Assembly (NCBI RefSeq): GCF_052425735.1
Contig: NC_135771.1
Location: 5,580,001-5,644,000, forward strand
Length of the DNA stretch: 64,000 bases
Direction: 5' to 3'
From: Oculina patagonica
Lineage: Eukaryota
The notes beneath the pieces are model-generated. The model was not told the origin of the DNA. It saw nothing but the letters and a program-made list of their open reading frames with translations, and did no database searches. This document shows positions 1 to 32,900 of this stretch, in pieces (within the stretch, counting starts at the first letter, position 1; each line of letters starts with the position of its first letter). A program made the position numbers and the translations under genes.

Positions 1-74
1 TTTTCTTGATTTTTGTCTTCAAAGTGCACAATATTGTAGGTTTTGGACTGCAATCCTTTAGAGTTTCTACTAAA

Positions 75-104
75 ACAATTAGACTACTCGTCCTCGTTTT
101 CTAT

Positions 105-140
<36 letters not shown>

Positions 141-147
141 TTGCTCA

Positions 148-177
<30 letters not shown>
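75..177. mobile_element. Short palindromic MITE
   Basis: AACAATTAGACTAC..GTAGTCTAATTGTT, a near-perfect hairpin. A similar hairpin element lies at ~42650-42765. Confidence 0.65.
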
Positions 178-179
<2 letters not shown>

Positions 180-401
180 ATATAAAGAGATTTGATGATT
201 TAACGATCTCCTTTCCCCATATACTGACTTTGAACTGTGTTTGTCTTTTTCAGGCGGTCAGAACAGTTATGAGGTGCACGTGTACATGTACAGAAAGCCT
301 GTTTAGCAGATCTTCTAGAGTAGAAATATCGTGTGATATTTGTACGTTTGTTTGTATCCTACGTACCGAGGGGATTGGATAATAATAGCAAATGTTAACA
401 C

Positions 402-8900: not shown

Positions 8901-11900
8901 TTAGAACGTGGTTTCCAGAACGCAATTATAAAACAACAAAGTGAACGGAGGAAAACAGCTTATCTGTGAGATAAGAAAACGTTATTGACTGGTAACTTGA
9001 GAGCAGTGGCTGAAAACAACAAATTTAGAAGACTACTTTCAGCTGTCCTTCGTGCGATACCCGACGATATTTGTATTTGTCGTCAAACTATCAAGACGTT
9101 TACTACACAGCTAAAAAGACTTGGAACAACAAGATGCTACATAGCCAAATTCTTGGACATTTTGATATTTAACTTCAAAATTTGCATTGGCATAAACTCT
9201 TAAAACGGTTTCAGCTAACATCGAACTGAAATTCTTGCTACTGCCGTTCGGTGTGCGAAGAACTCACAACGGTATGGAAACAACAAACAACACGACAAAA
9301 TGTTTTTTCTTGACAGACGTTCAGCTCTCGCACGAAGGAGGTATCTTCATCGCGGAGATAATCTGTTGCGCTATTAACTCTGTGTTGTCCTTAGTAGCGA
9401 CTCTATGGAACATTTTGGTCATCCTTGTGATCTGGAAGACACCAGCTCTCCACTCGCCTTCGAATATTCTCATATGTTGTCTCGCTGGTTCGGACCTGGT
9501 AATCGGTCTCTTAGCACAGCCTATGCTTGTCACTTATAAGATCGCCGAGTTTAAGGACAGTGCAGAAACTGCCTGCATTGGAAGGCTCATTCACTGGATA
9601 GCTGGGTTTGTGTGTGCAGGGGTTTCTGTTATGACAATAGCAGCAATATCGGTGGATAAAGTGCTCGCGCTGTATCTGCATCTTCGTTACAAACAAGTCG
9701 TCACCGTGGCGCGAGTTTTGAAAGTTGTTTTCGTGTTTTGGTTCTTTTGTGTAACTGCAGCTGTTTTTCTCTTCGTTTCCAACTCGGATCGATACTGGAC
9801 GCTTGTTCCTCTGCCTGTGCTCTGTATAAGTCTAACAACCACGTTTGTAGCGTACATTAAAGTGTTTGGTGTTCTTCGAAGGCATCGAAACCAAATCCGA
9901 GCCCAGACTCGCTCAGCTTGGAACGGGGTCAACATGCGAAAGTACAAGAAGTCCGTAATAACTATGGTCTATGTTCTAGCGATGTTTCTCGCTTGTTATA
10001 CGCCGTTTTTAACAGCAATGGCAATGCGCCTCTTTGTTGGTTATAACTCTACAGTTAAACTAGCTTACGAATGGGGAGCAACGGTCGTATATCTCAATTC
10101 TTCGTTAAACCCCTTATTATACTGGTTCAGAATGCAAGAGATACGCCTTGCAACGTACAATACCATAAGAAAACTCCGCGGAAAAGACAGTATTGTTGAC
10201 AGTAAAGTTTATAACTTTAGCGTTTATAAAGAGGGCATGTATAATGAAAGCGTCCTCAGCAAAAACGGAGTCATAGACATTTCGCAAGCAACTCAAAATA
10301 AACTGCAGTAATTTAAAACGGATCCAACTAACTTTATTTTACACCTACAAGCCGTCTTAACATTACGGTAATGTTAATTCAGACAATGACAAGTTCATAA
10401 TCAATTATTTAAACATCATTCGTAAAAATTGTTCTATGCAAAACAATTGCTCGTTATGTGTACATTACACTGCCCCGACGAATTTCACAGGAAAAAACAA
10501 TCTATAGGCTCGAAAAAAGCCACACGAAAAAACAATCTATGGGCAAGAAAACAGCCACTTCCAGAGATAGTAAGCATTTCTAACGAGCATCCTGAGCAAA
10601 AACAGAGTTCTAAACGTTTCGCAAGCAACTCAAAATTAACTGCAGCAACTGAACCAACTAACTTTATTTTACTCCTACAAGCCGTCTGTAATTTTTATTG
10701 AGACGACGATAAGTACATGATCAATTATTTAAGCATCATTCGTAAAACTTCTTGTTTTATGCAAAACAATAGCCCGTATTGTCTACGTTACACTGCGCCA
10801 ACAGATTTCACACGAGTTAACAATATATGGGCTCGAAAAAGCCACTTCTAGAGAATATTATCAGCTGATCAGAGAGCATTTATAGCGAAAGCGTCTTGAG
10901 CAAAAACGATGTTATGGACATTTCGCAAGCAACTCAAAATTAACTGCGGTAACGGATCCAATTCAACTAGCTTTATTTTACTCCCACAAGCTGTCTGTAA
11001 TGTTTACGAAGACGATGATGAGTTTGATGGGTTCGTGATCAATTATTTAAACATCATTCGTAAACTGTCTTGTTTTATGCAAAGCAATAGCCAGTTATGT
11101 CTACGTTACAATTTTACTCCGAGCAAACAATCGATGGGCTCGAATAAAGCCACTTCTAGAGAATATGATAAGTGGGGAAAAAATTTGAAATAACAGGTCT
11201 TTGCGTGTAAAAAGGAGAGAATTCTCCTATTAAATAAATTGTGATAGATAATATAATTTGCATTTACTACTTTAAGTATTTGTACACCTGTACAAAACGC
11301 CAGGCGATTTGAATGCAGTGAAAATAAAACTAAGCTAAAACTAGGCAATTTTATTATTTACATTGCAAGTTCTTTAGGGAAGAGCGTAAAACGGTCAGAA
11401 TGCCCCAAGAAAGGAGGGTGTTTATATTAACTAAGATGTAAAGAGCCATTACTGTTTTATACTAATTATTTAAAGGTTCCAATATTATTGACATATAACC
11501 CGCAGAGAACGTTTATCTAAGTGGTGCTTTATTATGCGTAGCACATTAAATTCAATGTCATTAGTTTCACACCGTTGCGATTTTGAATTTTAAGAGTAAG
11601 AAAATTGCCATCGGAAATGGTATACAGTGGAACTAAAATAATTATTCACCACACGCCGTTTACAGTACCTATAAAATTACTCGTCTTATAAATATTGTGG
11701 TGCTCTTAGCTCTAAGTAAAAAGTTTTTAGACATAAATAATTAATAAATGAATATTTTGAAAGGTGATTGTATTGATGAATTGAGGTTGATTAAAAATGG
11801 TATTCGGTAACTAGAACTAAAAAAATATTCAAGCCGTTTACTGAATACGTATAAGACTCGTCCTATAAATGTGGTGGTGGTGCTCTAAGCTCTAAGTAAC

Positions 11901-14900
11901 AAGTTTGCAGACATAAATCAATAGTTAATGAATTAGAAGGTGTATGGATTGAAGAATGGAGGGTGACCCGGGGGGTACTCCCATAAATTTCGGATAGGGG
12001 TGCCAAGGTTCTTAAACCCTGACCCTATTTAAGGATAAAGAAAGCGAAAATTGATACCCTTTTTAAGGCCCAAAACCGAAAAATGACACCCTATTTAAGG
12101 GGAGGAGAAACGTTCCGTGACGACCCAAATAACGGCAAACCGCGTACGGCAAGACACAAATCTTTATAAAATCGCTTTTCTAATACCTGAACTGAAAATT
12201 CAGTTTTCAGATATCTTTTTCTCGTCTAGCTGGGCGTTTATTTTAGCTAATAGAATTTAGGTACCCTATCTAAGGATCACAGCGGGAACACATTGCCAAA
12301 AGTAGCAAAAATGATACCCTATTTAAGGACCGAGAACCTCAAAAACCATACCCTATCGGGCGGCACATACCTATATAGGCCACATATGGAAGTACCCCCC
12401 CCCCCCCCCGGGAGGGTGATTAAGGTGAAAACTAATGATATCCATTTGCTACGGATCTAAGAGTAAGGTTCCGTCAATATCAGTGCTTTTAAGCAACAAC
12501 TTAAAAGTTGATGCAAAGCCAATATATTTCCGAGAAAGAAAATTATCTCGAGACCAAGAGACGACATGCTTTTGGCAAATATCCTAATTTCCGCGACAAT
12601 TATACAATTTTAAGCGTTTTAATTCAAATCTGAGAATTCTGAAAAATTGATGATGTTAAAATTCTGCAAGGTGTTGAAACATATTTATTTTACATAGATG
12701 TTTACGTAAATGCGAAGAAAAGAGTCACGCGACAATTATACAATTTTAAGCGTTTGAATTCAAATCTGAGAATTCTGAAAAATTGATGATGTTAAAATTC
12801 TGCAAGGTGTTGAAACATATTTATTTTACATAGATGTTTACGTAAATGCGAAGAAAAGAGTCAAATATTACAGTCTAATCAAATGAATGTTTTGTCTAAA
12901 GTGTCACTACTGGACGTATTTTTTTTGTTCGACGTGAGGTGGAAATAAGACGGTGAGCGGCTTCAGTCATAATTTATATCTTTTATTGGGCCAATACTGT
13001 TTTTCTTTGTCATCATCATTAACCTTGGCAATTTTAAGTGCACTTATACGATCGTTCGTTAAGTAACGGAAACTGTCCGAAGGTTGCGAAATGGGAAATA
13101 ATCAGTCCGAGATACAAGATATATGAACTGTAATCATTGAATGTTAGAGCCGTAGGGCTTCTTTAGCCAGGTTTTTCTCCGGGGGTACGGGATTGCTACT
13201 CGGAATGTTTGGTTTCGATGTGCACTGCCCGATTTCTGTTACGCACCTTACCTTATTTCGGACTAAAGCATGATTTTTTTCTCCACCCTGTTTCAAACCT
13301 GGCATGGTATTTAAAGGATCTGTTCTTTTTTTTTTTTCTTTTTTTAAAAACAATTTTCTCCTGAAGCGGTTTTCAGATGATTGTAATTTATATGGATTAT
13401 TTTTGGTCTTTCTATCTTGTTGAAGGTTATCTCCAATTATAAATCTATGAACAAATCAGATTTCATCACAGAAAATCTGAGAGGCGGAATTGCTTGCGTC
13501 AATTATTTCATTCTATGAGTCAGAATCATATATTTCTGCATGTTTATCATGTCATATTACGGCCCCGTTGACGAAATTACCTCGAACTGAGGTGTGTCGG
13601 GCAAATAAAGTGGTCCGTCCCCGCAAACATAAGCAATTCCTTTAGCGTAAGCAATTTACGACATCTACCAAGACGATTTTACGACATTGCAACAAAATAT
13701 AACTGTATTAAGGTGGCACGTGATTAAAAATGTTTGACTGGGTTCGTTTTGGCTGTATTGAGCAANNNNNNNNNNNNNNNNNNNNNNNNNNNNNNNNNNN
13801 NNNNNNNNNNNNNNNNNNNNNNNNNNNNNNNNNNNNNNNNNNNNNNNNNNNNNNNNNNNNNNNNNNNNNNNNNNNNNNNNNNNNNNNNNNNNNNNNNNNN
13901 NNNNNNNNNNNNNNNNNNNNNNNNNNNNNNNNNNNNNNNNNNNNNNNCAAAACTACGATTAGGGGTACATTCCCTACGCATACAAACTGGAAAATATGAA
14001 AATGCAGGAGCATCCATATCAGTTGAAGAACGAAAGTGTTTGGTATGTAAGGAAAACCACATAGAGGACGAACAGCATTTTTTAATGTATTGCAAAGGGT
14101 ATAATGATGTTAGAAAAGAGCTTCATTCCATCGTGTCACAAACTGATCCTCGCTTTGTAGGTTTAACTGATCATGAAAAAATAATGTACCTTCTTAAATT
14201 AGATAATTATGCTACCTCTAGAATCATAGCTAAATATATCTTTCTTATGTTTCAAAAAAGAAAAGAAATTTTAAAAAATTGAAAGTTATATCAATAAATA
14301 GTTTAATTAATAGTTCAATTATTACCGTAAACGTTTGCATTGTATTTTCATTATTTGTTATTAAGTAATTTGTTAGCATAGTTGCTATAACACCTTTATT
14401 GTAACTAGACCAATACCTCCCTTTGGAGTGTAAGGCACAATAAAGATTTACTGTTNNNNNNNNNNNNNNNNNNNNNNNNNNNNNNNNNNNNNNNNNNNNN
14501 NNNNNNNNNNNNNNNNNNNNNNNNNNNNNNNNNNNNNNNNNNNNNNNNNNNNNNNNNNNNNNNNNNNNNNNNNNNNNNNNNNNNNNNNNNNNNNNNNNNN
14601 NNNNNNNNNNNNNNNNNNNNNNNNNNNNNNNNNNNNNNNNNNNNNNNNNNNNNNNNNNNNNNNNNNNNNNNNNNNNNNNNNNNNNNNNNNNNNNNNNNNN
14701 NNNNNNCAGGCCTACCTACTTAATCAATAAGCTCATGGTCAGCTCTATACTTACGGGGGCAGGGTTCCTCATTGCATGGTTCTTCTAGGAGTCGTTCCCC
14801 TTCGCAAACCTTTCCTCCGTACTGTGGAGACGGGCTGTCGCAAAACCGATAACGAATACGCGTTCCACCGTTACAGGCACGCGAGCAATTTGTCCATCCG

Positions 14901-17900
14901 GACCAGGTACCCCAGTTGCCATCTTGTGCGGTACCAACTAGTGAAGAAACCATGATTAAGCAGCATTTTAATCGAAGAAAGTTTTACAACGCTTTTATTT
15001 AATCTTTTCAATATCAACTGAAGTTAAATGAAAGCTGTTGAGCAATACTTTCATATGTTGGCTGTTCTTATTAAGTACTAGTGTTGCAACACTTGCAAAT
15101 CTCGTTTAAGATTATTTTGATTTTGAACTCAAAAACATGTTCTCTCGGGAGTAAACGAGCTAAAGCGGTGTCAAAGTGTAACTGCCAATATGGGAGAAAA
15201 AATGTGAGTAATTAAGGCAGTAACTACAAAGCGAACAGTAACTATTGTTAATGAACGTTGGAATATAAAAGCCTAACAATTTATTCACTGTTCAGTTTCA
15301 GTGAGAAGCACATCTAAAAAAGACTATTAATGTTAAATTATCGGACAAGTTTCGTAGTTTACATTTTCAGTGGTCGTCACAGGATTTTTTATTCGTTCGT
15401 TATTTCACGTTGGCATCCACGCCCTATTTACACAGCCACAAAAATGAGAACGGAAGACAAACCTTTGTCACAAGCCGATGCGGGATCGAAGCCATCTTCA
15501 CAGGCGCATTGGCCACTGTTGGTACAAAACTAAAGGATAAGAAAGGAATAAAACAATTTACTTTGAGGCGAGAAGAAATTTAGGTTAATAATGATCATGA
15601 TATAAAAGAAGAAGCTAAGACGTGCAGTCTCTGAACAGCCAGGAAAACAAGACAAACTCACTCCGCGTCCGGCACATTCTTTTCCTTTAACGACTCTGCA
15701 TTTCTTTCGTTGTATTTGTTGGCATCTGTTCTCCTTGCAAACCTGCAAGGCGAGTGTGCTGTAGTGATATTATAGTTAAAAATGGCGTTCATAGGAAGAA
15801 CAACTGTATTCTTTTCATCCATTTGCCAACGGTAAATAAAATTAGCAGAAGACCGCCCTCGTGGACCACCTTTTCTTACTGATTTTCACATTTTTTTTAC
15901 GTTTATTCAGAGGATTTGCAATTGGCGTTAACTAGACTGCAAAACAGTCGTATCTTTAGCGAACGCGCTCGGGCTTCGAACGAGAGCGAGAGGTCTGGAG
16001 CCCATGTCAAAACGACCCGGCGCTTCGCGCCTTCGATAAGCGCTTTTTCCAACGACTTTAAAGAAAAAACGACTGTTTTGCAGTCTAGCGTTAACCGGAT
16101 TTTCAACGAGGTCTTTCAATCCAACATACAGAGCTCAGCAAAGTTAACATTTCTTTGAATGGTTAATAAAATACCAGCTTATGCTATATAACATAATTAT
16201 TATTTTAGAATGGTTCACGTCGCTTAACTTACCATTTCGTATAACACACACTTCATGTCTAGGAACTTACACTGTCAACCACCGCCTTTGTTTGTAGACG
16301 CGGTTCGGGGGGGCGCCCCGCTTTTTTTCTATTGGACGGGCGCCCGGGTGGGTGAAACAAAAAAAAATTACACTGTTGCATTTGACCTTGATGTTACCGT
16401 ACCTGATTTTCTCCACACTTTGTTCCTTCTTTAACCATTCCTAACCCAACAAAATCACTTTGATAATTGAGCTTGGCGATGCTGAAACGATATAACCATA
16501 TCTAAATTCAAATGTACTCTCAATTTTTCTACATTTATAAATTTAGAAAGAGGATAATAAAGTAACGATTTGGATCATTATTACTGAGAAAATTGTGAAT
16601 CAAGTCTTAATCACCTATGTCAATGTAACATCTAACATTTATATTTGCACTGATTAACATGATTAAGGGGCACTGATTTGAGGGGCATATCTTGTTGTTG
16701 CAAAAAGTGCTGTTGGTTAACTAGGTATTGTACTATGGTTTGGGTATTATATCTCTCTTTTGTATCCTTTGTTTTCAAATCATTTGATGATCGCATCATT
16801 CGCAATGCCAAGAAACTGCCGATTTGAGCTTCTCTGCAAAAGCCTCCCAAAGTCCAACCCTACGTCCTCGTCGTGGGAGGCGATAACGGGTAATGCCGGC
16901 TAACAGGGCAAACTGTGCGCGGGGTTAGATCCCACCGCAGGACATGGAGGTGGTCCCCAGGAAATAGCTGGACTAATTATTGCCCAGGAAACAAATAGAA
17001 AAACACCAATACATGAGCTGTGCGGCTCGTTACCAGAACTGGATATCTGACGAGTCTATAGTTACCGTGTTGTATTGGTACTTGTTATATCCAAAATAGT
17101 TTCCAGGTAGAGAAGAATCACTAGAAAGACATCGGGCGAGGTGGAAAGAATTATAAGAGACAGAAAAAAGTCCCCGGGCGGGGGGGGGGGCGTACTCCCT
17201 ATAATGGCCTATACGAGGAGGCATCCGCCCGAAAGGGGTACCTTTTTCATGCTTCAGGTATATAAAAGGGTAGGGATTTCACAAATTTGGGTATATGAAA
17301 GGGTAGGGAGATTAGGTATTTAAAAGGGCCTTCAATCAAAATATTTCGAACAGACGCACCTTATGGATGTAGCAGTACATTTATTAAACGCTACATAAAA
17401 ATGGAATCAAGATTCTTGTTTCAGGCATATGTCGTGTCTTTTCAGTAGATGAAAGGGGTACCTTTTTTCAGTAAAAGGTATACGAAAGGGGTGCCTTTTC
17501 TGTGAAAATCGTATATAAAAGGGTAAGGGGTTGGACCTCGGGGCGGAGCCTCCCCGTACAAAAATTTTTTAAGTAGTCCCCCCCCCCCCCACCCCGGGAC
17601 AAAAGTTTAAAACACTTGTCTCCATATCATTAACCACAAAGGCGTAGTCGTTTCCTGTTCACGCGCCGCTCGCGTTCTCAAAAAGAAAAACACTCCCTCA
17701 CAGGAAACACAGGCGTTCAGAGGACAAGAATGATAAAAAAGTAAAAAAATCTTGAAATACCTGCACTGAGCCCCAGTAGGATGAGGTATCGTCTTGTATT
17801 CGACGCCATAGTCAACATCTGGCCTCTGTCGCACGCTGTCTGTGCACTGGATTTGTCCGCACATAACATCTCTAAAATTATAACATTTAAAAACTAACTC

Positions 17901-20900
17901 CATATGCATGAAATTATAGGTGGCATTATTTTCTCTTGGTGACACAGTGATCTAATGGCTAAGGTGCTGAACAACGGCTAGAAAAGCCCCAAGTTAGGTC
18001 TTTGTGTTGTGCTCTTGGACCTTGGGCAGGACATCCTTGAGTCTCTTGGGCCCCGAAGCCACGAAAAGGCTTCACTTTACTTATACAGTTGTATGGTTTG
18101 GTTATTACAAATTCCAAAACTAGAAATTACTACAAAAAAGCGACAACTGATCACTGCACGTAATCTTCCACGGCCGAATTTGATTGGTAAGTTAGGTTTA
18201 TTGTAACGCTGTTTTAACATATATTTAACAAGAGCAAGTTGTAAACTGCTGTGACGTCAAAATAAGCGTACAAAATAAATGCCTCAAAATTAAAAAAAAT
18301 TAAAAGCTTGCCTTCGAGTAGAAAACATTGTCATATTCGTTCAATAGACTACCGCTAACAAAAGTAGCTCTGTAACTACACTATTCAATCTTCAATAAGT
18401 TTCTGTTATTTAACAAAATTCGTTTTTATTCATCAGCTGACCTTTTCGCACAGGGGCGAGGCTTTGCGGCATTGCATGTCCCGTAAGGCGTTCGTTCTGA
18501 GTTATATTTGTCCCAGCATACCTTCTCGGCTGAACGGGCGGCTTCAGACAGACCAGAATACAAGTTAGGACGAAGGCGTGCTACCTTTCTGCCACGCGAG
18601 GGAAGTAACATATTTGCATTTAGCTGCTTTGCAGCTTAGTTACTGGTCGTAGGTCATGGTTATCAGAAAATAAATGTTACTTCGTAACTCTTTCAACACG
18701 CACTGAACATTCAAACTTTAGAAAACCAAACATTTAGCCTGGGACTTCTGTCCTGTGAACTCTTTTACTCTATAACCGTCCCCTCGTTTGAGACACTTCC
18801 TTCTTTAGATTTAATGTGCGTTTTTTATTCACAATCCTGGAATGAGAATGGCCAGAATGTAAATGCGTGCGTTTTTTATTTCGCATTCTTGTTCCGGAAT
18901 GGACAGAACGCCATTCCATCCATGAACAGCATGTTGCGAATGAAAATCCAAGATGGCGGACGGCGTATCCCGTGATTTGAGGGATGTGTCTCCTCTCCTT
19001 TGTAAATAGCCCTGCCAGACCATTCGGTAAATCCATTACAGTCTCCATACTTTCTTCCTCCTCCTTATTTAAGAGAAAAGTTGTTGCGATAATGGCTGCA
19101 ATGGCAGCCTCTTCGTCGGCCGCCATGGGCGACTACATGGGCGTTTTTTAATGCAGGCAATCCGAATTATTCCTAGCAATCTGTACCAACCATTCTTATT
19201 CCAGAATTGTGGGTTAAGAAACGCGCCCTTAGATTGTGGGTAGACGCAACTTCCCTAAGTTCTAAGTTCCTTGGGCCGTTTTGGAATAACTATTTAAGAA
19301 AACGAAATATTTCTCCGCCAACTGTTCCTCTTCAGTGTCCGGCTTGAATAATGATGATTAAGCAAATTTTACTTTTAGCTACTAATCCTCACAATTCATC
19401 AGTTATATGATACTTACTTCCGCCCCACAGATCAGAACATTGGGTGTCCAGTGTGTCGGTACACTTGCCGAGGTGACAGTAAGACTGGAAAAGATAAAAA
19501 CACACACTTACTTCTGAAGAGCAAACAATCGATCGATCAGTAAAACAGTGAGTAAGTGAGAGAGTGAATAAGCGAGGGGAAGTGAACGAGTACATAAACG
19601 AAAGGACAGATGGACCGAAGAGTAAACGAGAGAGTAAGCGAGTCATTTGGTAAGTCAAACGGTCGGCCAAATAGACAGTCGTCAATCAGTTAAGAATCAA
19701 TCAATCAATCAATCAATTATGTATTTACGTATCGAAGCGAGTAAGTGATCTAGTAGCAAACAGTCAGGGAAATGAGCGTTACAGACAGCGTACGCGTATT
19801 ATGCAAAAAGCATTCCTGCATGGGGAATAAAGAAAGGCCTTTACGTGGCCTCGCATTAACCTTTCTCGTTCCCGGCGAAATTATCATGAACTAGAGCAAA
19901 TTCAACAGTGTTCAACAAAAAAAAAACGCTGCACGGTAGGAATACACTTGCTCACTCACTCATCCTCTTCGCTCCTATTAGTGGAGCATAAGGTTGGAAA
20001 CGTAAGGAAAACACGAAGAGAAAACTTTACAACTAGAGACTCTTACATTAGCCTCTAGTTTATCTCCGCCCTCACTGTACGCCTTCCACTGTTTTCCATC
20101 TTGACTGAACCAAAGGTAATACCCTTCAACTAGATTCCATTCTTGTCCCTGCATCGCTACTCGTGTCACCATCTGAACCTGTGTAACCATACAAAAGTAC
20201 CAATTAAAGAATCTTTCCTACCTGTTGTTGTGGGAGGCGCGATGGCCTAATGGTTTGTGCGCCGGACTCCAGATCGAGCGGTTCGGGTTCTAGCCTGCGT
20301 GGCCGGCGTTAAAGGGGAAGGAGAAGGGGAGTTCGAGCGCGAGGTGCGAGGAGAGAGCGCGAAGCGCGATCGGAGAAGGGGGAAGGGGAACGCCTGCCCT
20401 GACGCTATTGTTTTTGTCGTTTTTTACGTCCAGATTCTGGACGCAAAAATCGTGATTGGTCAGAATTTAAAGAGTGTGAAAATTGATTGTTCTGATCAGT
20501 CAGATGTATGTCATTCAATCGATTAATTTGATGGCTGTGGTTTGTTCTCCACTTTCATTCAATGCAGAGGAATACAATGGCGAATGTTATGACTGAGCGA
20601 TTTCTCTGCGAAGCGGTTGATTCTTTGAAAGAAATCGGCCGTTGTAGGATTTAGTATCAAACTACTGAATTTGCGAAAAAATTATAACAAGTTAATTATA
20701 AAGTTGTTTGGGTCACGGCCGGTTGCAATCCGACGCCATAAACTCCAGCACCGGAAACGCTGCTTGATTGAAATAGATGTTCTCTCAGTCTCATAACGGC
20801 AACTTTCGTAACAAATCCGCAGTTGAAGGGTGCAAGGAAGATATATCTGACCTGATCTACCATGAAAAGATTTTGTTTTGCCATATTTCTGACAAGAAGA

Positions 20901-23900
20901 CGAGAAGAAAAGAATTAGATAGGCAATTCAAATGGTGAAGGGTTTTATTCTCCGCGAAAATCGGCACCAATCAGATTGGATAATTTTGACAGCCAGACGT
21001 AAAACAGAGGGCAAGCAGATGACAAGTACTTTAGGGGCGGTATGAAAAAAACAATAGCGTCAGGGCAGGCGTTCCCCTTCCCCCCTTCCCCGATCGCGCT
21101 TCGCGCTCTCTCCTCGCAACTCGCGCTTCGCGCTCGAACTCCCCTTCTCCTTCCCCTTTGAACGCCGGCCACGCAGGCTATTCGGGTTCGAGCCCTGGCC
21201 GGGGCACTGCGTTGTGTTCTTAGTCAAGGCACTTTACTCTCATAGTCCCTCTCTCCACACAGGTGTATAAATGGAAACCGGCGAATCCAGGGGGGGAGTA
21301 GTAAGACTACTAGCCGCTTAATGCTGCAGAAACCGGGAAAAGCTCGAGCTCCGGCCTGATGAGCTACTTGGTTCGAAAGCATGCTTAATCTTTTTTGCCT
21401 GATGTTGGAACAACAAGACTAAAAATGTCATTTTGCCACGTTTTTGTTAGACTGTCCACAGCCTCTCGATTTTTCAACGCAAAAAAGCAAACGAAGCGAG
21501 CGCGAAGCGCGAGCGCGCGGCGGGTGAGGGGTGCTCCCCGCCCCCCACCCCCTTGCTTCTTCCGTTTTGCGCTGGCGTCCAGTTTTCTCGCCGTTCTTAC
21601 CGTGCGCTCATCGATCGAAAAAAACACGAAAAAATAGAGGGGTGGACAGTCTACGTTTTTGTGTATTAAGCGTCGACTCAAGACAAATATTTTTTGTGTG
21701 CAAAGTCTATTGTGCTCAGTTCTCAAATGGTAAATTTTAAAGGTTTTAGAATTTCAAACGCCAGATGATATTTTTGCCCACAACTCCGAATCTCTAAAAC
21801 GGACACCTTTGGGACCGGCTCCAACTGTTCGTCCTAGTAGAGGTGTCCGTTAAAAAAGAGTTGACTGTATTAACAAAGAAAAGCATTATACTTGTCCAAG
21901 GTCGATCTGTAGATATTCGTCTTTATCGCTTTTATCATCTGGGTTACCACACCAGGCTTTTCGTCCATTAAGTCGAGCATATTTAGGCAACCACTGAGCA
22001 CTGAGAGTAGATGAAGCCGTCAGCTGGTTGTCTTTTATGTTACCATTCATGATACCAAGAGATAGGGCGCAATCTGAAGTGCATGGAATTGCGTAAATAG
22101 AAAAGTTGATCAAAACACCACCTAACATTTTCTCTTGTTTTCATGACTGTTAAGAGATTATAAAGCAGTGACATAAGAAAGTAACCCCCTCCTTACACCC
22201 CTCCCCGTCAGTTGAACAACATAATAAGCGAAAAATCACCACTATCGTCCCTATCACCCGCCCAAATCTCCATAAGATTTGTGTCTATAAAAAACATGTC
22301 CGAAACTTGCCTCCTTTGGACGTCGTTGCTAAAAGTTTAGTTTCTTAAACTTTCTTTCTTTCTTAAACATTTCTTACGTTCTTAAGCTTAAAAGCCATAT
22401 TACCATAGTATTAAGCTATATGAAGACCATGTATAGTAGGGCTTACCTTGCTTCATGAATGTGACTTTAGTACGTTCTTCGTCACATCCTTGCCATAGAC
22501 AACATTCAACTCCTTCTCGAGGTGCCATTCCATACAGATGAAGACACATACCAGTCGGTTTGTGGCGTAAAGAATGAGCTACATTAAAATAAACAATGTT
22601 CACAAATTTAGAACAAACAAAGGTAAGCATTAAGGAAGAAAAAAATAAATCGTACGAATGTTTGTGCAAATTTATAAGGCTTAAAATTAAAGGTACAAAT
22701 TTAGCTACAAATTTTAAAAGGTACAATAATTTAGGCTACAAAGTTTTGTACAAATGTAAGTCCAAATTTAGAATACAAATTCAGGTACAAATTCAAGTCA
22801 AGGCACAAATTACAAGATACAAATTTAGTTCTCAAACTCATTAATAATTCATCAAGTTAAACAAAGAAAATCATAACCGTGAAGGAGGTTTAGATACCCG
22901 GTCTTAATTAGCATAGATCAGTTTTAAGGATTTTATTTCTCCGTTTACTCCGTAGTTTTTGTCTCGATCGAGAAGATATATCAAACAGTGTTCCATCGGC
23001 TATCCAAACACCTCGAATTTCGTCAAAAATACTTCGTTGCCTGTCATATTTTCAACACTCTTTTCCGTGTTTGGATATCCCGATGAAACACTGTCTCGCG
23101 TGCTATATATATCACGTACAAAATACGTACAAATTTTAGAAATCGTACCTGCAGTTCTTTCAAATTTAGCGTCCTGTGGTTGGCATTTGCTGCTAATCAT
23201 AAGCTCGCATCTTTTTCCTCGAGCTGGTTTACGCGGGCACACCATTTTTCCACTGCAGTGATGTTTAAGGGTGCCATCCGCCGACAAAGTAAATTGCATG
23301 AATGGTTGATTACACGGCTTGGTTTGAGTGAGCACAAGAATGGTTCCGTCAGGCGGCTGGCAGTTCCCTCTCTGAGGCTTGATGCACATTCCGCTTGCTT
23401 GTAAGAGAGGTGTTGGTGCTGAGGGTTGGGCTGCGAGCCGGTTGTACCAAACATGAGTGGATGCGAAACTTTTCAATTCACGTATAATAAAACCAGACTT
23501 TTTTTCTTAAAGGGACTATGTCACGGGGATTTTGTAGTTTTTTGGTCTTAACTGTTTTGAAAAGTGGTAGGCAACTACACCCATGAAAAAAGACATTATC
23601 TTTGAACATTAAACGGAAGTTATAACCTTTATTTGGGGATTAAAATCAAACTTTCGACTATAAAACGAAAACGTTTTAAAAATGCAATTCTTTTCCATCC
23701 AATTAAAGCCATCCGCAGCCAAACGCACTTCAAACAGTTTAAGTGCTCTAAAATAGCAAGTATTAATAAAAATGGATCATTATTTTTAGGTTCCCTACGA
23801 CATAAATGTAAATTTGGGCAGTTCAAAAATCTGTTAAAATCCATGACAAAACCCCTTTAACAGTTAGACAGTTATCTCACCTTGCTCTCCCGAACAACCA

Positions 23901-26900
23901 TACAATTCTGTCTTAAGGCACATCAGTGAATAACTCCAGTATTGAGGGTTTATCCTGAAATACCGCGCCTCGATTGGTGGATTTAGCACGGTGTTCTTAG
24001 TTTGGTCTTTGCTTGTTGGACCGACAAGAAGCTACGGAACATAAAAAGATACCAGAAATTATAAAATCCAACAGATATATATTTTTCTTCAGCGTGACTT
24101 GCTTGTCTGTAGCATAATCATATAATTCAAACATTGTATAATGTCTAGAAAATAGAAAGCTATCAGGTTTTGTTAAGCCCAATAAAACTTTTTTTTTAGC
24201 GAGATTGGTAAGTCATGTACATGTGCACGGTGTTATATTCCTCAAATTGTAAACATTCCACCATTTTGTGCAGTTGCTTTTTCGTTTGTTATCAGCCGGA
24301 GTACATTCGTAACAGCAATCAAACAAAATCAGAAACACGTAAAAATGTGATGACAACTATATATTTTCTAGGAAAATTATCCAAATATTTTTTTCTTGCA
24401 AGAAAATGCTTTGAAAATGTAGTGCCGGACTTATTACGGTGTATTTACTTAATGCTATTTGCAGCCGAACAGGAAAGCAATGATACTAAAATAAACGTAA
24501 AGTAGGGAACTCTCATATCCATAGGCATGTATAACAAAATTTATAAAAAACTCATGTTTAAAGAGCTGTTACCTGTCCTTTGCTGTTACAGGGATATCCG
24601 TCATGGATAAACGAATCCGCAGGGCACTACAGTATATAGACAAAACTTCATTATCAGCGAGCATATTACTTAAATTTCTTCCTAACGAAAGCGACAACAA
24701 TTACACGTCATAAAAACCATAATTTGTGCATGTCGGTGACGTATTTATTTACTTACATCTCCACTATCCCCTGGGCAATACTCTGGAACATCACAGTCGC
24801 CTTCACTAGCTCGACACAAGATGCCGTGAGGTTTAAACTGCAGTGAAAATAACGCCGACGAATAAAATATATTTAAGTCGTAGTTTGTGAGAGGACCCCT
24901 CCACCAACTATGTGTCAATCAATGTGTAATTATTGAGCGTCAGTGTGGTCACTGTAGGTGTCGCTAAGCATTATCCCTTAAGTAATGCCATAGGAAACTG
25001 CGCAACATGTCTAGTTAGTGAAAGTGGTGCCCTGGGAAGACTCGGGTACAAAAGGAGAGGAGCTCTTATCTTTTAGGGGTTCAAATCTTTGGCTTGATAC
25101 CACTTAGGGTGGTTAAATCTATAATGACAACCTTTTGTTCTACCTCAGTACCGTGTAGGGGATTAAACCAGAAAAAAATATGACAAGAACAATCCGTCGT
25201 TTTAGAACTGGTTTCTGGTGTGAAAACTTTCAATCACTGATGCAGATGCATCTATATCCCGGTATTCGCTTACAATCGCACTGTAAAACGTGAAGAGATA
25301 GAGGAGAAGGGAATATCAATAAGTGCGGTGGCTCCCCTTTAGATCCCCTGATCCCCACCTCCACGCCCCCCCCCCCCCTGGGGAGAAAAGAAGGATGAAA
25401 ATGAATTCAAGCCACGCCTCAAGTAGACATTTTGCTAACTTTCGGGGATTACTTTCAAATTTTCGGCGACTACCCCGTCACGTTTATATCACTAAATACC
25501 AGGACGTTTTTTTTCCTACTCCATGCTGCGCGTTTTGAAAGATCAAACTTAGCGCGCTGTCAACAAATCAATTTCTCAGTAATGTTTTATGGTAAGAAAA
25601 ACGTGATGCCATGAATGTATACCAAACTCACCACACATTCTTGACAGCAGCCATGATTCAGCACACTACACTGTGAGCCGGGCTTCAGCTTGCAGCCTTT
25701 GGGTTCACAACACGGATCTAACTCCAGGCAATCCTGATAAAGAAACAGACTGATCAATAATCACGTGACTAAAATAACAAACATCTATCACGTCATTTTC
25801 AGTGAAATACCAAAAAGAATCGCGGGTCTCAGCCTTCACATACTAGGAGTATAATTCCAAACCCGCAGAGAGAATATATGACGCAAATCAACGTTGTGTT
25901 TTAATGTAAAAGCGCGATTTCTGGTCTGCTATCTGTTATTTTTTTTCATGTTTTTAGCATTGCATAAAGACAAATTTCAGATGTAATAACCTTGAAAGAA
26001 TTAATGTGTTCACCTCTTCAGTTCCGCAATCACATTCCTCTCCTTGTTCCACGAGTCCATTCCCGCATCTTGGTCTTAATTCCTGAAATAGTGAGAGAAA
26101 AAAATAGAAAACTTATAGTGCATCTTGCTAAATTTAGCTCACATATCATCTAGACTTATTTTGTGTCCGTATCCCCTCCCCCCAAGTGTTTCTATCTTTG
26201 TTCTAAATAAGACTAAGGCAAGGTCAGTTTGGAAAGTAATGACCACCTCCCCCCACCCAACGAATTCCCTTACCACCTCCTCCCTACCACCTGCTGTATT
26301 CCCTAACCACCCCTCCCCACCCTAGAAGGTAGAAATATATGACTGATCTGAAAGTAACGAGGGTGGTTACCATCGGAAGTTAACGGCATTGAACCCGTAT
26401 TGTTACTCCCTTTGGCGGTTTTATTTCTTTTTTATTTTTTTTTTTCCACCTTTCAACCCTTTCAATAGCAATTTTTTTGCATATTGAAAAAAAAATTGTT
26501 ATCGTGACATTGGTCCATAAAAGGAAGTTAAATCGGTAATGAAAATAACTCAAGTGTCATCAATTTTTATCACGAACGACCTTTGCGCGAGTTGAGTCAC
26601 ATAAAGTTGGGTGTAACGCATGCAGTAGAAATTCTAGCTTCAAACGTGGACGAACTTTACATTGAAATTTCGTTTTGAAAGCGACGTCAAATAATTAAGT
26701 GACTTATTTGTCACGAATCAAGCGAAAACAGCGATTGAGCTGCTGGTGATTGTAATATTTTAAACTCCAGATATAAACACTTGTTGCACAGCCGTGCAAA
26801 CATTCCTGAGATATCGGTTGCAGTCGGGGTCCCGCTCTTATCATTAAACTGTATATTCAGACATCGGAGTGAATGTCCTTGGTTTTGACTCAATAACAAA

Positions 26901-29900
26901 AAGATAATCAACTTTATTCTAACATTTGCAACAATTTCTTATTGGGCATCAGAGAGCCCAACGATTTTTGACGACATTTCGGCGCGTTTAGTGAAACCGA
27001 CAGAACAGAACTTTACGAACGAGACCCGGTCTTCTCTAAAAGGCTCGTCACGCTATGTGAATCTCTGATAACTTTGTAAAACAGCATATATTTCTGGTGA
27101 AAATACACGACTTTTTCTTAACGTTGTGAATGTATATATTATATTGCATGTTACAGTAGCAGTATAATTTGTATTTATGTGTAACACTCTATGAATCACG
27201 TATCAGACAGATTTATAACAGCATCTCGCCGCTTGATTTTATTATTATAATTATCAAGATAATTACAATAGTGTTTAGATGTGGGGGATTCCTTTCATTG
27301 TTAAACTCTGATAATTATTTTTTTTGTGTTTGTTGATTGGACAGTTGTGTTTTCAATGACAACATCTCGATTAACGTCAAAATTAAACTGCGCTGCACGC
27401 AAATTAGGCCTTTGTTGATAAACTGTCGAGGGCTTGTATAGCTTCATTCCAGCCAAGCCCTTTGAGCGAACAGCTTTGCACGAACGCCGTGAAAAAAGAA
27501 AATCTAAAACTCTGAAGACAACATGTCGAAGGTCAGTGAAGACCAAATGGCTGAGTTCCGAGATGCGTATTGCCTGTTCGATCGCATTGGTGATGGAAAA
27601 ATCGACGGCGAGCAAATTGAAGATCTGTTGCGTTCCATGGGCCTAAACCCTCAGGGTTCGGATCTCAAACAAGTCCGAGAAGACTACAAGAACAAGAGAG
27701 TCGAATTTGAGGAATGGCTTGGAATCTACACACAGTTCCGCAACAAACCAGAGCCGGTCCGGGAGGATTTCATCGAAGCGTTCAAATGCTATGATCGGGA
27801 TAGTTCCGGTACCATCGATGGAGCCTCATTGAGGGGAATGCTATGTCTTCGTGGAGACAGCAAACTGTCGGAGGATGAAGCGAATGAGTTGCTTGCCCCA
27901 GTAGAAGATGCTCAGAAAGGTGTGATTAACTACGAGGAAATTATCAAGCTGGTAATGTCAAAGCCAGAGAAGGTTGAATGATTGCAAACTTTAAATCACT
28001 GATCATGAACATTTGAACAGAACTGAAAATTTCACTGATCTAGACATTGAACTATTATGATTTTACGATGAGTAGTACTGCTTTACTGAAAATAATTATA
28101 ACTGTAGTTTTAAACGATTTTTCTTTGACAGACAATTGTTACACTTGTAACTCTGGAAAACAGATATAGTTTTATGTATTATTTTATTCCCCTGTTTATT
28201 AAAGATACAATTTTGTTTAAGAACTTTGGGATAACATTAAGTTTTTTCTGGTTAGAACTTTCAATTATGGATTCGACCAAAGAAGGGAAAAACGCTGAAT
28301 AAAAATTCCTGAAAATTCTTTAAGTTTTAAAGCATTCGAATCTAGTCTGTTAATGCGTGTTTTGTCTGTTTCTGTGTATTATAGGTTCATTGTATAGAAC
28401 AATGGTCGGCTTCTTCTTTGGGTGTGACTCGCCGAAACTTTTATCTCTATAATCGAATGTTTCGAAAAGAGGAAAAACTATTAAGCTACGTTTTGATTTG
28501 ACTGTATCATTTAGTTACTGTGATGTAGATCTGTGTTTTAAGCATATTTATATCGAGTTTTAACAAGCTGGAGTTTTTGTTAAGAGTAACAGACTGTTTG
28601 TTCACAGATAAGGGAACGTTCCGCTTCTGTGACCAAATTGCCCCCGGTACTTAGTATTATAAACAAACCACAAAGAATTGCATTGCGTGACCGACTTGCC
28701 CACAGCGTGTGTTATGTGACGTGACTTGTGTAATGTCGATCGAATGTAGAGCTTTTGCGGGCAAGTTCATAAACATAAGTGACATAACTGACATAAGTTG
28801 AAATTTTTTCCTACTTTCGTTGAAACGAGCCTTCGCAACGCCTTCGCAACAAGAGGATTGAAAACAGATAACTTCTGCGAGAGTCGGAAATTGAGGTCAA
28901 TGGTACCTTTATCCTTTTAAAACTAGCCGCTTTTTTGCCACTGACATATAAACCGATTCAGGGGAGAGGGGTCTGAACGATTTTAAGGGTACGACATTAC
29001 GTCTGAGGGTTGTGGGGTGGGGTGTTGAGAAAAAAAGAAAAGTCTGTAGAATTTTAGAATGTGCCAAGAATTAAGATATCATTGGTTGAGGGTTACCGGT
29101 TTTTTATTCAATAACCTTTCATTCCCAAGCTCTCAAACTAAACTCTCATTACTGATTTCCATACATTTCTTACAATATCCGTTATGGGAATTTGGTTGTG
29201 AATCAAGACAATATCCCTTGTTGATGATTTTCTTTATTCTCGTTACCTGTCTGCTTGAAAATGTATTAATATTGTAAGGAGAAAAATGATGTTGATCTCA
29301 CTCACCTTCTTTGGTCTGTCATACAAACAGAAATCGTTCAGCTTTGAAAGGCTTTTCATGCTGCAGTCCGAGAATCCAGCAACACGAGTCCTGTCCGGTG
29401 GATAACAAAGAGTCGTCAAAATCGTTGTCAAGGTCCCAGCTGGTCACGTTGCTTGTTCCCAAACCCTTTGGAAATATAGCTTTGTGGTTCCACTGTATTA
29501 CCTCAGAACTCTGAGGATTAAGCCTTCTCGGTTGCATGAAATAACTGGCGGAAATTTGCCTGCTACGTTCATGTGCCTGAACAAGGCACTATTATCAATT
29601 TGATCTTTGTTGTTTCCAGCCTCAACAAACAAGAAACGTTTTAGAATCCGGCCTCCAAAACAAAAATTAACTGCTTTCGAACTCCAGATACCCTATGCCG
29701 CCCCATTCCTAACCTGCGATCAGGCGTTCTTTTTTCTTTTTTCGCAGCAGTAGTAGGGAGGGAGGGTATGATTTCAGGTTACCCCATTCCCCGCACACCC
29801 TCAGTAATTCTTTTCCAAGTACTGTTAAGCCAATTATGAGTTCCTCAGCAGAGAAGTTTGCTCACTGCTATAAATAGTTTTCCGGTTATGTCGTTTGTTG

Positions 29901-32900
29901 TCCTCTGTGTTTAAAAACGGTCGAGACAGCAGCAAAAATGTAGAAATTTTACAAAATAATTTTCACAAAATGTTTCGACGGTACATCCGTCATCGTCAGT
30001 GTGACAGTTATGAAGAAAGTTTACAGTGATTTAAAACGTGCCTGTTACAAATCGTACGTTAACATTATTAAGCCCCAAAAAGTCCCCAAAGTACCACAAG
30101 CCATATAGGTAGTTTCCGCATCCCTCCTTCCCCACTCCCGTCAGGTGTGTTACGTTTCATTGACATACTCACTTGTGTCCCCCCATGATACAGCCTCTGG
30201 GAGTCAGACAAGTACATCCGCCAATTTCTAACAAAAAGGGTGAAATAATAAACAATTAATTCGAAAGTGAACCGTTCACAGCCATCATCGAAAAAGTTAT
30301 TGTTTGCGCATCATGAAGACATTAAGCTAAAATTATGTTTCTCCATCCTCATACCCAGGGTCTTTGTTCCCCTTAACCAGCGGACGAGACTCGAGCGACG
30401 CTGGAAAGTTCAATCAAACTCAATCAATCAACTTTATTTTACGAGGGTTGCACGTAACAGTCTTCGACTGACAAACCTGTGGCCCTCGGATTCCCGATCG
30501 AATTGGAATTTAGAAGTGTTGGTTTTTGTGGAGGGAGGAAAACCGGAGAACCCGGAGAAAAACCCTCGGAGCAAGGACGAGAACCAACAACAAACTCAAC
30601 CCACATATGGTACCTGGTACGGAATCGAACCCGGTCCACATTGGTGGGAGGCGAGCGCTCTCACCACTGCGCCATCCCTGCTCCCCGATTTGAAGTCTGA
30701 AAATGTCGGACTTCCAGTTGAATTGTGCAAACCTAGCTTTCAAAAGCATGACAAACAATTTTTTGGTGTTTTACTACCGGTCATTTTTATTGTTTCTCGA
30801 GCCAATCAGATTCGATCCTGCAACGGAACTTTCGAGAGTCGCTCGTTTCGTCAAGCTTGTGCAGTTAGGAACTCGAGGTACGAGAATGCTGTTTCTACTG
30901 ATGCGATTATAAATCTTGATCTCAGTCTGTTTTTTCCTGGGTTTCTTCTTTACAAAGCAATGTTATACCTCATACTAACACCAACCTTCATCGTGATCCA
31001 TTCCGAAGTTGTGTCCCATTTCATGAGCGGAAGCTATCCAGGGTCCCACGGAAATGTAATGATCCCACTACAAGAATAAAAACGCACAACTGAAAGTGAA
31101 ATTATACGTAAGCTATTAACGATAACCGGGAAAGCTACACCTAAATAAGCAGGTTCTTTACTTTTGATGAACGAAAACGTCAACCCCTCGCCTGTTTTCC
31201 ATTCTTTTTTCTTCGCACTGTTCTCAAAATGCGGGTTTGCACTGGGCATAAGCACAAGCACAATCAAAAGCACACTCACTCTTCTTATGCTGTTCTCACA
31301 AGAAGTTTAGCACAATATACACCTTAGCGTAACAATATTCTCCTCTTTTCCTTATGCTTGCGCTCACACTCATGCTTATGCTTATACTTGTGCGCATGAT
31401 TACCGCGACAATTCCAGAAGAGTCGTCAGTGCACATGCCATAAAGTGCTGCCATTCCTGCAGCATCCGTCCAGCTGTTGTTACTGTAAAGAGAAAAAAAT
31501 ACTCAATTGCACATAGAAAATGATCCGTTTTAACGTGTCTCCAAACTGATATAGAGCGGTTTTCACTTGAGTGTCGAAAGTGAATTGCGTTTGCTTTGAT
31601 TTTCCATTACTACGCTTAGTAATTGGCTTAAAAATTTCACGCCACTTTCTCAGCCAATCAGGAGTAAAATCAAAGCCAATCGTGACTCGCTCGCGCACGT
31701 TTTCCCGCGCTTCGTGCCAGCTACGAGTATTTGCTTCGAGTTTTGATTGGTTCACTGGATTGTCTGTGTCCTTAGTGATTGGCCAGTGTAATTGCTTTGG
31801 TTTTGGTTTTTCGACACTCAATTGAAAACTGCTCTATGTGGCATTCTAAGTGATTCAGCTAACAAGAAATATCGACTCTAAGGAGAGATGAAGTGACATA
31901 ATAGTGCGGTCCGGGCTCGTGCCCTAGCCCTGGCCAATTGCAAGTCATTGTGTTGTGTTCTTGGGCATGACAACTAACTCTTACAGTGCCTCTCTCCACC
32001 CAACGAATAAAATGCTGGGGAGGAGGATAAAAACGCTCCATGTCGCTATATGCTACGAAAACCATTGATAATAGTGCCGCCGTGCAGGGTCACTGGGCTT
32101 GAAATGCAATGAATGGTTCCAGGTCCCAGTTACCCAAATCCCATTTTCCAGTTAAAATGTTCCCAAACTGATCCCGTTCCAAGTCCCCTCTCTTACTCTC
32201 GATCGAAATTTAGCACGCAAAACCAAAACAGTATCACACTAGTTACAATAGTTACAAATGATGGAAATCTAATTTCTTCTCACAATATCAATACATTGTC
32301 GAGCAGACAGGTGGTGAGAATAAAGAAAATGATCAGCCTATAGATATCTTGACATGCAACCATTTTCTCAGAACAGCTAATAAAAGGAATGTATAACAGG
32401 CTGTAAGGGGAATTATCATTTCGATCAACACTCACCACATCAGTTGTGCGTTATCGTGATCAGGAAAGGTTTTCATCAGCGTGTTCTTGCGATATTTTGC
32501 AAATCTATCATAGTACTCCGTGGCCAAATCACTTCTGACAATCTTGTCGCCATTGTTCCAGAATTCCAGCGCAACCAGGACTACTCTGATGTTGATTTTG
32601 CTGTAGATCTGACAGAAAGTATTCTTACTTATAAATTTCATATGTTAATGTTTTGTAAAAAATTCATTCATTCCCGTTTTGATCTGCCACTGAATACGTT
32701 AAAGGGCCACTCACTATCACGAGTACTACAAAAAAATAAGAGCCTAAAGACGTAGTAGTCCAGTTTTGTTGAAAATTACTATGCCAGTGTACTGAGGCCA
32801 TGAACAAGTGATGTTATTGTGATGCCGTAACGAACTTCAGATCTTAACTTGATTGAAAGAGTCAGGCTGTCTTTTTTAAGTTCTGCCCTTGTGGTCTGGA

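Follow-up and report, generated by a model that had tools for sequence, protein, structure and literature searches.

The 64,000 nucleotides (nt) of Oculina patagonica DNA analysed here (the window; contig NC_135771.1, positions 5,580,001 to 5,644,000) carry on the minus strand a reprolysin/ADAM gene in which the final disintegrin exon is separated from the first Cys-rich exon by five exons. These exons encode the two parts of a discoidin (F5/8C) domain in reversed order, on either side of a predicted ricin-type β-trefoil. We consider it quite probable, as one joint explanation, that a putatively secreted reprolysin/ADAM-like protease has these five exons as a regular part of its coding sequence and that the module encoded by them predates the split between Anthozoa and Hydrozoa. 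It is also likely that the module is a natural circular permutation of a discoidin domain by way of that domain's own phase-0 intron, probably made before cnidarians and bilaterians separated, and that this nest of a trefoil in a discoidin in a protease marks an undescribed family of putatively secreted multi-lectin ADAMs in cnidarians and at least one nemertean.

All features described below are on the minus strand. The module is preceded by exon 19 of the ADAM gene (e19; 24573..24626), the last disintegrin exon (CPADSF...PCNSKGQ), which ends in phase 0. It is followed by exon 25 (e25; 19418..19484, 67 nt), the first Cys-rich (ADAM_CR) exon (SYCHLGKC...), which starts in phase 0 and was placed by sequence and by tblastn with P0169, the closest full-length homologue. 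Exon e20 (23881..24031, 151 nt, starting in phase 0 and ending in phase 1) encodes the C-terminal piece of the discoidin domain (C-piece), from the equivalent of F-x-G-N-x-D to ...YGC. Lobes 1 and 2 of the trefoil are encoded by e21 (23149..23430, 282 nt) and lobe 3 by e22 (22447..22578, 132 nt), both exons being in phase 1 at both ends. The N-terminal piece (N-piece) is shared between e23 (21892..22073, 182 nt, starting in phase 1 and ending in phase 0; DC...LQIDLGQ) and e24 (20047..20178, 132 nt, phase 0 at both ends; ...FSQDGKQWKAY...EAN). Each of the five exons has an AG acceptor and a GT donor, and together they make 879 nt, or 293 stop-free codons. From the intron before e20 to the intron after e24, the phases read 0, 1, 1, 1, 0 and 0. 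Phase 0 is thus limited to the outer borders of the module and to the e23/e24 intron, and the other three internal introns are in phase 1. The in-frame insert with phase-0 ends that the first-pass annotation had described between the disintegrin and Cys-rich parts was therefore confirmed at the sequence level.

The reversed order of the discoidin pieces was apparent from Pfam searches run exon by exon. Along the 127 positions of PF00754, e20 matched 89-118 (E 4e-4), e23 matched 1-43 (E 2.6e-7; 31.2 bits, above the cut-off of 28.2) and e24 matched 45-82 (E 0.013). The last third of the domain comes first and the first two thirds come last, and the pieces, as had been claimed, are complementary, with neither overlap nor gap. 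Consequently, no single PF00754 match runs through the module from start to end. It is because of this swapped order that Pfam sees partial F5/8C domains only, and in the full-length relatives the match is limited to positions 1-87 or 3-82. Every sequence segment and core motif of a discoidin domain is present in the module (Pfam; alignments A3 and A4). In alignments of the pieces to C and N exons from ordinary discoidin genes, 32-43% of residues were identical to those of P0169, the first row. Both terminal cysteines are retained in all family members, with G44 and C45 invariant in A3 and C2 nearly invariant in A4; their conservation had also been noted in the first-pass annotation. Additional discoidin pieces in the flanking introns, already reported as absent, were detected neither by tblastn with the full-length homologue nor by whole-genome exon searches.

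Neither e21 nor e22 gave a match to PF00652 or to any other Pfam family at the gathering score. The phmmer matches of e21 nevertheless include proteins with PF00652, and e22 was assigned to lobe 3 from alignment A2. In the model of P0169, where the trefoil occupies residues 63-197, this region aligned by VIA-align to Mitsuba-1 (5xg5) with a Z score of 20.0 and a root-mean-square deviation (rmsd) of 1.7 Å over 128 residues, and to the CBM13 domain 1knl with a Z score of 18.3. The template modelling scores by target given by Foldseek were 0.80-0.85. By its predicted fold, then, the bridge is a ricin-type β-trefoil, as first proposed. In lobe 3 (alignment A2, columns ~180-200), two relatives, P0173 and P0174, and one paralogue of this genome, L003, have C-x-H-P-x-G-G/A, a motif which we take to resemble the sugar-site motif of MytiLec-type lectins. 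Most other rows have the looser C-x-H-T-x-G-G/A, and the window copy reads C-L-H-L-Y-G-M. From these letters, the putative sugar site of the window trefoil may be degenerate.

In discoidin domains, the N- and C-termini are adjacent and linked by a disulphide, and the termini of a β-trefoil are also adjacent. The reassembly of the two discoidin pieces was assessed by structure prediction on residues 500-813 of P0169, with an alignment of ten family members that also included the exons from the window and from three paralogues. The AlphaFold2 model had a mean predicted local distance difference test score (pLDDT) of 81.6 and a predicted template modelling score (pTM) of 0.64. By part, pLDDT was ~87-90 for the C-piece strands, 83-96 for the trefoil and 78-95 for the N-piece. 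In a split-domain complex test, the N-piece (103 residues) was presented with the C-piece (49 residues) as a separate partner. The interaction prediction score from aligned errors (ipSAE) was 0.86, against 0.18 for the best control; a mark of 0.86 is reached by 51 of 78 solved complexes and by 2 of 108 mismatched pairs. Contacts agreed to at least 96% among three runs, with a partner pLDDT of at least 81. In the contacts of least predicted error, the C-piece strand ARYLRI was flanked by two strands of the N-piece, LQVDLG and F-H-L-Y-Y-S, and strand LRTDF lay beside strand ILVQG. These predicted contacts are what a rebuilt sandwich requires. Moreover, the pLDDT of the N-piece fell from 81-86 to 32-54 once an unrelated protein replaced the C-piece. 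The N-piece alone superposes on a lactadherin-like model (AFDB A0A6P4Y5I2; 43% identity, query residues 199-297). According to these models, both pieces most likely contribute to a single rebuilt discoidin domain, on whose old termini the trefoil is seated. Thus, the refolding of the halves into a single domain, as envisaged at the outset, finds its support in prediction.

The expression of the module was followed in RNA contigs from four runs (X1 to X4) under three organism labels, which were mapped to the window; the joints given below are those in the listed part of a longer table. Two joints had been named as checks in the first-pass annotation. One of them, 24573>24031 (e19 to e20), was found in X1 record 6, together with 23881>23430 (e20 to e21). 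The e20-e21 joint was also found in X2 record 13 and X4 record 27, e22 appeared with spliced flanks in X2 record 11, and e23 was joined to e24 in X3 record 14. The other, 20047>19484 (e24 to e25), is not among the rows listed, and its use was deduced from depth. In bin 19300-19486, depth equals the depth of the contig multiplied by 67/187, both for X1 record 5 (19.5 to 7.0) and for X4 record 21 (3.8 to 1.36); therefore, these two contigs would continue into the 67-nt e25. By the same arithmetic, X3 record 20 appears to be a fully spliced e18-e19-e20-e21 contig. Intron bins 19487-19860, 22105-22291 and 24162-24535 had zero depth in all four runs. A separate observation concerns the short intron upstream of e19, 97 nt of which (24627-24723) are kept in X1 record 6, a contig that is spliced downstream; this suggests partial intron retention or pre-mRNA in that one run.

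The module is shared by a family of genes. Homologues of the trefoil exon are found elsewhere on the same chromosome-scale contig at 38-44% identity. In three regions fetched from the same genome, complete reprolysin genes have the five exons in unchanged order between their disintegrin and ADAM_CR exons, so that the module is present in at least three paralogous ADAM genes of this genome. Paralogous ADAM clusters lie on this contig (C14 of assembly G000) at 12.07-12.37 Mb, with at least six trefoil-exon matches, and at 1.71-1.74 Mb, and they point to a lineage-specific expansion. Queried against 1.8 billion representative proteins, e21 matched two full-length ADAMs of the same layout, one of Hydra vulgaris (XP_047134262) and one of the nemertean Tubulanus polymorphus. 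When the window exons were used to seed a profile, further members were found in Porites lutea, Pocillopora verrucosa, P. damicornis and Stylophora pistillata, together with two genes of Nematostella vectensis and several unnamed members. A word-based search with the Tubulanus insert alone matched only itself and a sea-urchin nectin. The protein of the window gene itself was not among the matches of any protein search, the best being paralogue-type relatives at 41-45% identity. The window module is 41-45% identical to anthozoan members, 32% to Tubulanus and 29% to Hydra, and the window gene is therefore a divergent paralogue. Family proteins are already in public databases under uninformative names; all but two of the relatives named by NCBI are called 'uncharacterized'.

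Their common layout is propeptide, reprolysin, disintegrin, module, ADAM_CR, TSP1, several fibrinogen-related domains and a second trefoil, with PA14 in addition in Hydra. All relatives share the junctions of the module, with ...PC-x(4) directly before the C-piece and x-x-C-x-x-G-x-C directly after the N-piece. The genes of Nematostella and Tubulanus have the five exons with boundaries and phases identical to those of the window; both also have a 54-nt exon homologous to e19, with identical boundaries, and a counterpart of e25. Since exon boundaries and phases are the same in these three genes, the module and its introns are older than the split of these lineages, and the module probably predates the cnidarian/bilaterian split. 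A recent local graft was considered and rejected, the module being found in paralogues, other cnidarians and a nemertean, with the same introns in Nematostella and Tubulanus. Indeed, the idea that the graft onto an ADAM is peculiar to this gene has to be given up in favour of an ancient, family-wide event.

The position of an intron in ordinary discoidin genes relates the permutation to a genetic mechanism. Whole-genome searches with e20 and e23 returned at least ~150 matches each, mostly separate short open frames. Six ordinary discoidin loci were fetched, and five were examined for intron position. In 5/5, an N exon entered in phase 1 is separated by a phase-0 intron from a C exon that is left in phase 1. 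The N exon ends in ...D/E-K before the gt, and the C exon begins after the ag with x-F-x-G-N. The internal phase-0 intron hence lies one residue before F-x-G-N-x-D, which is exactly the break of the permutation, and the end of e24 and the start of e20 fall at the same point and in the same phase (alignments A3 and A4). Phase 1, in which e20 ends and e23 starts, is also the phase at the outer borders of ordinary discoidin domains, and the trefoil forms a phase 1-1 unit. This coincidence of intron and break gives direct support to an exon-shuffling origin and to the part of the original proposal in which the cuts were made at equivalent phase-0 introns. Besides, all six fetched loci have the two-exon domain structure, and large tandem arrays of discoidin exons are found on many contigs (e.g. 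C4:47.49-47.86 Mb, C13:24.5-26.4 Mb and C12:6.3-6.7 Mb).

We propose that the module arose once, by exon shuffling. A donor with a discoidin-trefoil-discoidin arrangement would have been cut at two equivalent internal phase-0 introns of its discoidin domains, and an ADAM gene would have received the excised segment in one of its phase-0 introns. In the resulting protein, the discoidin β-sandwich would be opened at the loop before F-x-G-N-x-D and joined there to the ADAM chain between disintegrin and Cys-rich domains. The ricin-type β-trefoil would bridge the former N- and C-termini, which carry the cysteine pair, giving the order C-piece, trefoil, N-piece.

Several other explanations of the five exons were weighed. 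That their order is an artefact of assembly or annotation is almost inconceivable, as it is contradicted by the same order in three paralogues, in independent assemblies of other species and in spliced RNA contigs. The exons might also be a cassette skipped by most transcripts, the main product being an ordinary ADAM. With phase 0 at both ends, skipping would keep the frame, and the joints listed are part of a longer table. However, the exons are in spliced contigs of runs under three organism labels, no e19>e25 joint is among the rows listed, the module is in gene models of eight other species, and the exons are open and conserved across phyla; we consider a mostly skipped cassette very improbable. 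Still less should the discoidin pieces be seen as decayed remnants that no longer fold, leaving the trefoil alone functional. The window copy, as a divergent paralogue 41-45% identical to its anthozoan relatives, does read LLVGPTS where F-x-G-N-x-D is aligned, but the core motifs ARY-x-RI-x-P, LQ-x-DLG and YS-x-DG-x-x-W and both cysteines are conserved all the way from coral to nemertean, and the predicted assembly is of high confidence. Finally, the pieces could pair across two chains by three-dimensional domain swapping, which would make the module a protease dimerisation device. In the prediction the pieces bind as separate chains, which is equally compatible with pairing between chains, and a trefoil of ~135 residues stands between them. 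Against this, the C-piece strands are well placed in the one-chain model (pLDDT ~87-90, pTM 0.64), the trefoil termini lie together, so that the linker closes the gap, and the cysteine pair is conserved. We regard domain swapping as quite improbable.

The reading that we favour, a single discoidin domain permuted around a trefoil and expressed as part of the protease, also has points that weigh against it. Structure and complex were predicted on P0169, 45% identical, and not on the window's own spliced protein. A pass in the complex test may reflect solved discoidin folds remembered by the predictor; what the test shows is compatibility rather than folding in the cell, and it is blind to the difference between association within a chain and between chains. 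The lists from Foldseek PDB, wide VIA-align, AFDB clusters and ESM Atlas were dominated by the trefoil, and the one-chain discoidin sandwich was not demonstrated by alignment free of sequence order; row 10 of the ESM Atlas list (134 residues aligned, rmsd 2.3 Å, query residues 30-296) offers only a hint of it. On the side of the transcripts, the joints listed, being part of a longer table, leave room for a module-skipping isoform, and the RNA status of the runs is a tool's guess, for which the spliced contigs do argue. Lastly, the tandem discoidin-ricin gene put forward as donor was found neither in this genome nor, by Pfam, among distant trefoil homologues. Every trefoil-exon homologue in this genome is inside an ADAM paralogue, as insert or as C-terminal trefoil, and 20 of the more distant matches, checked with Pfam, are ricin-B domains fused to enzymes or other proteins, none with F5/8C except two ADAM relatives. 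A surviving tandem (F5/8C-ricin)n donor is thus unsupported, and other genomes could still hold one. Altogether, the interpretation given in the first-pass annotation is supported.

The host gene occupies 1..35919 of the window and extends past the window start, as mapped by tblastn of P0128, P0096 and P0169 against the window and the downstream stretch. Its part in the window comprises propeptide, reprolysin, disintegrin, the insert, ADAM_CR, TSP1 and fibrinogen-related exons. The catalytic exon (30978..31067; tblastn with P0169 and P0128) has an intact zinc site, HEMGHNFGMDHD, which conforms to the HExxHxxGxxHD signature of ADAM/reprolysin proteases (M12B). Disintegrin and ADAM_CR are both present with the insert between them, as seen by Pfam on the relatives and by exon mapping in the window. 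After ADAM_CR, TSP1 and fibrinogen-related exons were mapped, and in the relatives the last domain is a trefoil; a membrane helix was not explicitly searched for. The host gene has a second, C-terminal trefoil ~4.8 kb past the window start (L018:91-270; G000:C14:5575087-5575215, minus), and relatives have one too (e.g. P0169 residues 1691-1849). It is ~38% identical to the insert trefoil, and bridge and tail trefoils are therefore paralogous.

The introns of the module also contain repeats. Summed contig depth was very high in all four runs, up to ~16,800, at 21170-21356, 21731-21917 and 22853-23039, compared with ~3-20 for exons; these peaks are abundant transcribed repeat families inside introns. 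In the e23/e24 intron there are two inverted copies of a G+C-rich repeat (20250-20450 and 21060-21230), and one RNA contig links copies on opposite strands (20418/21079). This intron looks like the site of a foldback element or one resembling miniature inverted-repeat transposable elements.

No published description of a permuted discoidin, or of a cnidarian ADAM with discoidin and ricin domains, was found in searchable text. Undescribed in that text are the swapped order of the discoidin, the trefoil as its bridge and the place of the module inside the disintegrin/Cys-rich junction; ADAM, discoidin and trefoil are already known as kinds. Domain annotation with linear profiles under-reports permuted proteins of this sort, since all that it returns is a truncated F5/8C match. 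In cnidarians, the family is an expanded set of putatively secreted metalloproteases with four kinds of recognition domain (discoidin, trefoil, TSP1 and fibrinogen-related), which makes its members candidates for matrix remodelling or for the recognition of microbes or symbionts. The loops of discoidin domains bind lipids, sugars or collagen, ricin-type trefoils bind sugars, and in the solved structures of P-III snake-venom metalloproteinases and ADAMs the Cys-rich domain carries a substrate-targeting region. By analogy, we infer that the module would add two recognition surfaces beside that region and, together with the tail domains, might aim the protease at glycan- or lipid-bearing targets. 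Its size suits direct structural and glycan-binding tests.

Compared with known systems, each component of the module is conventional and its arrangement is not. Like the F5/8C domains (PF00754) of factors V/VIII, lactadherin/MFGE8, EDIL3 and DDR1, the module has all segments, the core motifs and the terminal cysteine pair, and its discoidin exons have the same borders as in ordinary discoidin genes of this genome. Unlike in these proteins, the order is swapped (89-end before 1-82), the old termini are bridged by an extra domain and the new termini lie in a former loop. With ricin-type trefoils (PF00652, CBM13), such as the MytiLec/Mitsuba-1 structure 5xg5 and the Streptomyces xylan-binding domain 1knl, the module shares the predicted three-lobed fold and sequence homology to PF00652 proteins; it differs in that the window exons escape Pfam and in that its trefoil is a bridge inside another domain. 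The host gene has propeptide, reprolysin, disintegrin and ADAM_CR in the order usual for ADAMs and snake-venom P-III metalloproteinases, but with 293 residues splitting the disintegrin/Cys-rich junction. Where membrane ADAMs have an EGF domain, membrane anchor and tail, TSP1, several fibrinogen-related domains and a second trefoil were mapped in the C-terminal part of the family. To our knowledge, natural circular permutations are few and their genetic route is rarely visible. Here, the break on a conserved intron and the same bounding introns in coral, sea anemone and ribbon worm make the mechanism, tandem copies cut at equivalent introns, readable from the genes. One precedent is the saposin/swaposin pair, a natural circular permutation explained by duplication followed by loss of the outer ends. 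The present module likewise fits two tandem copies, the first of which lost its front and the second its back, with the difference that here the cuts fall on a conserved intron of the parent domain and the domain that separated the copies stayed as the bridge.

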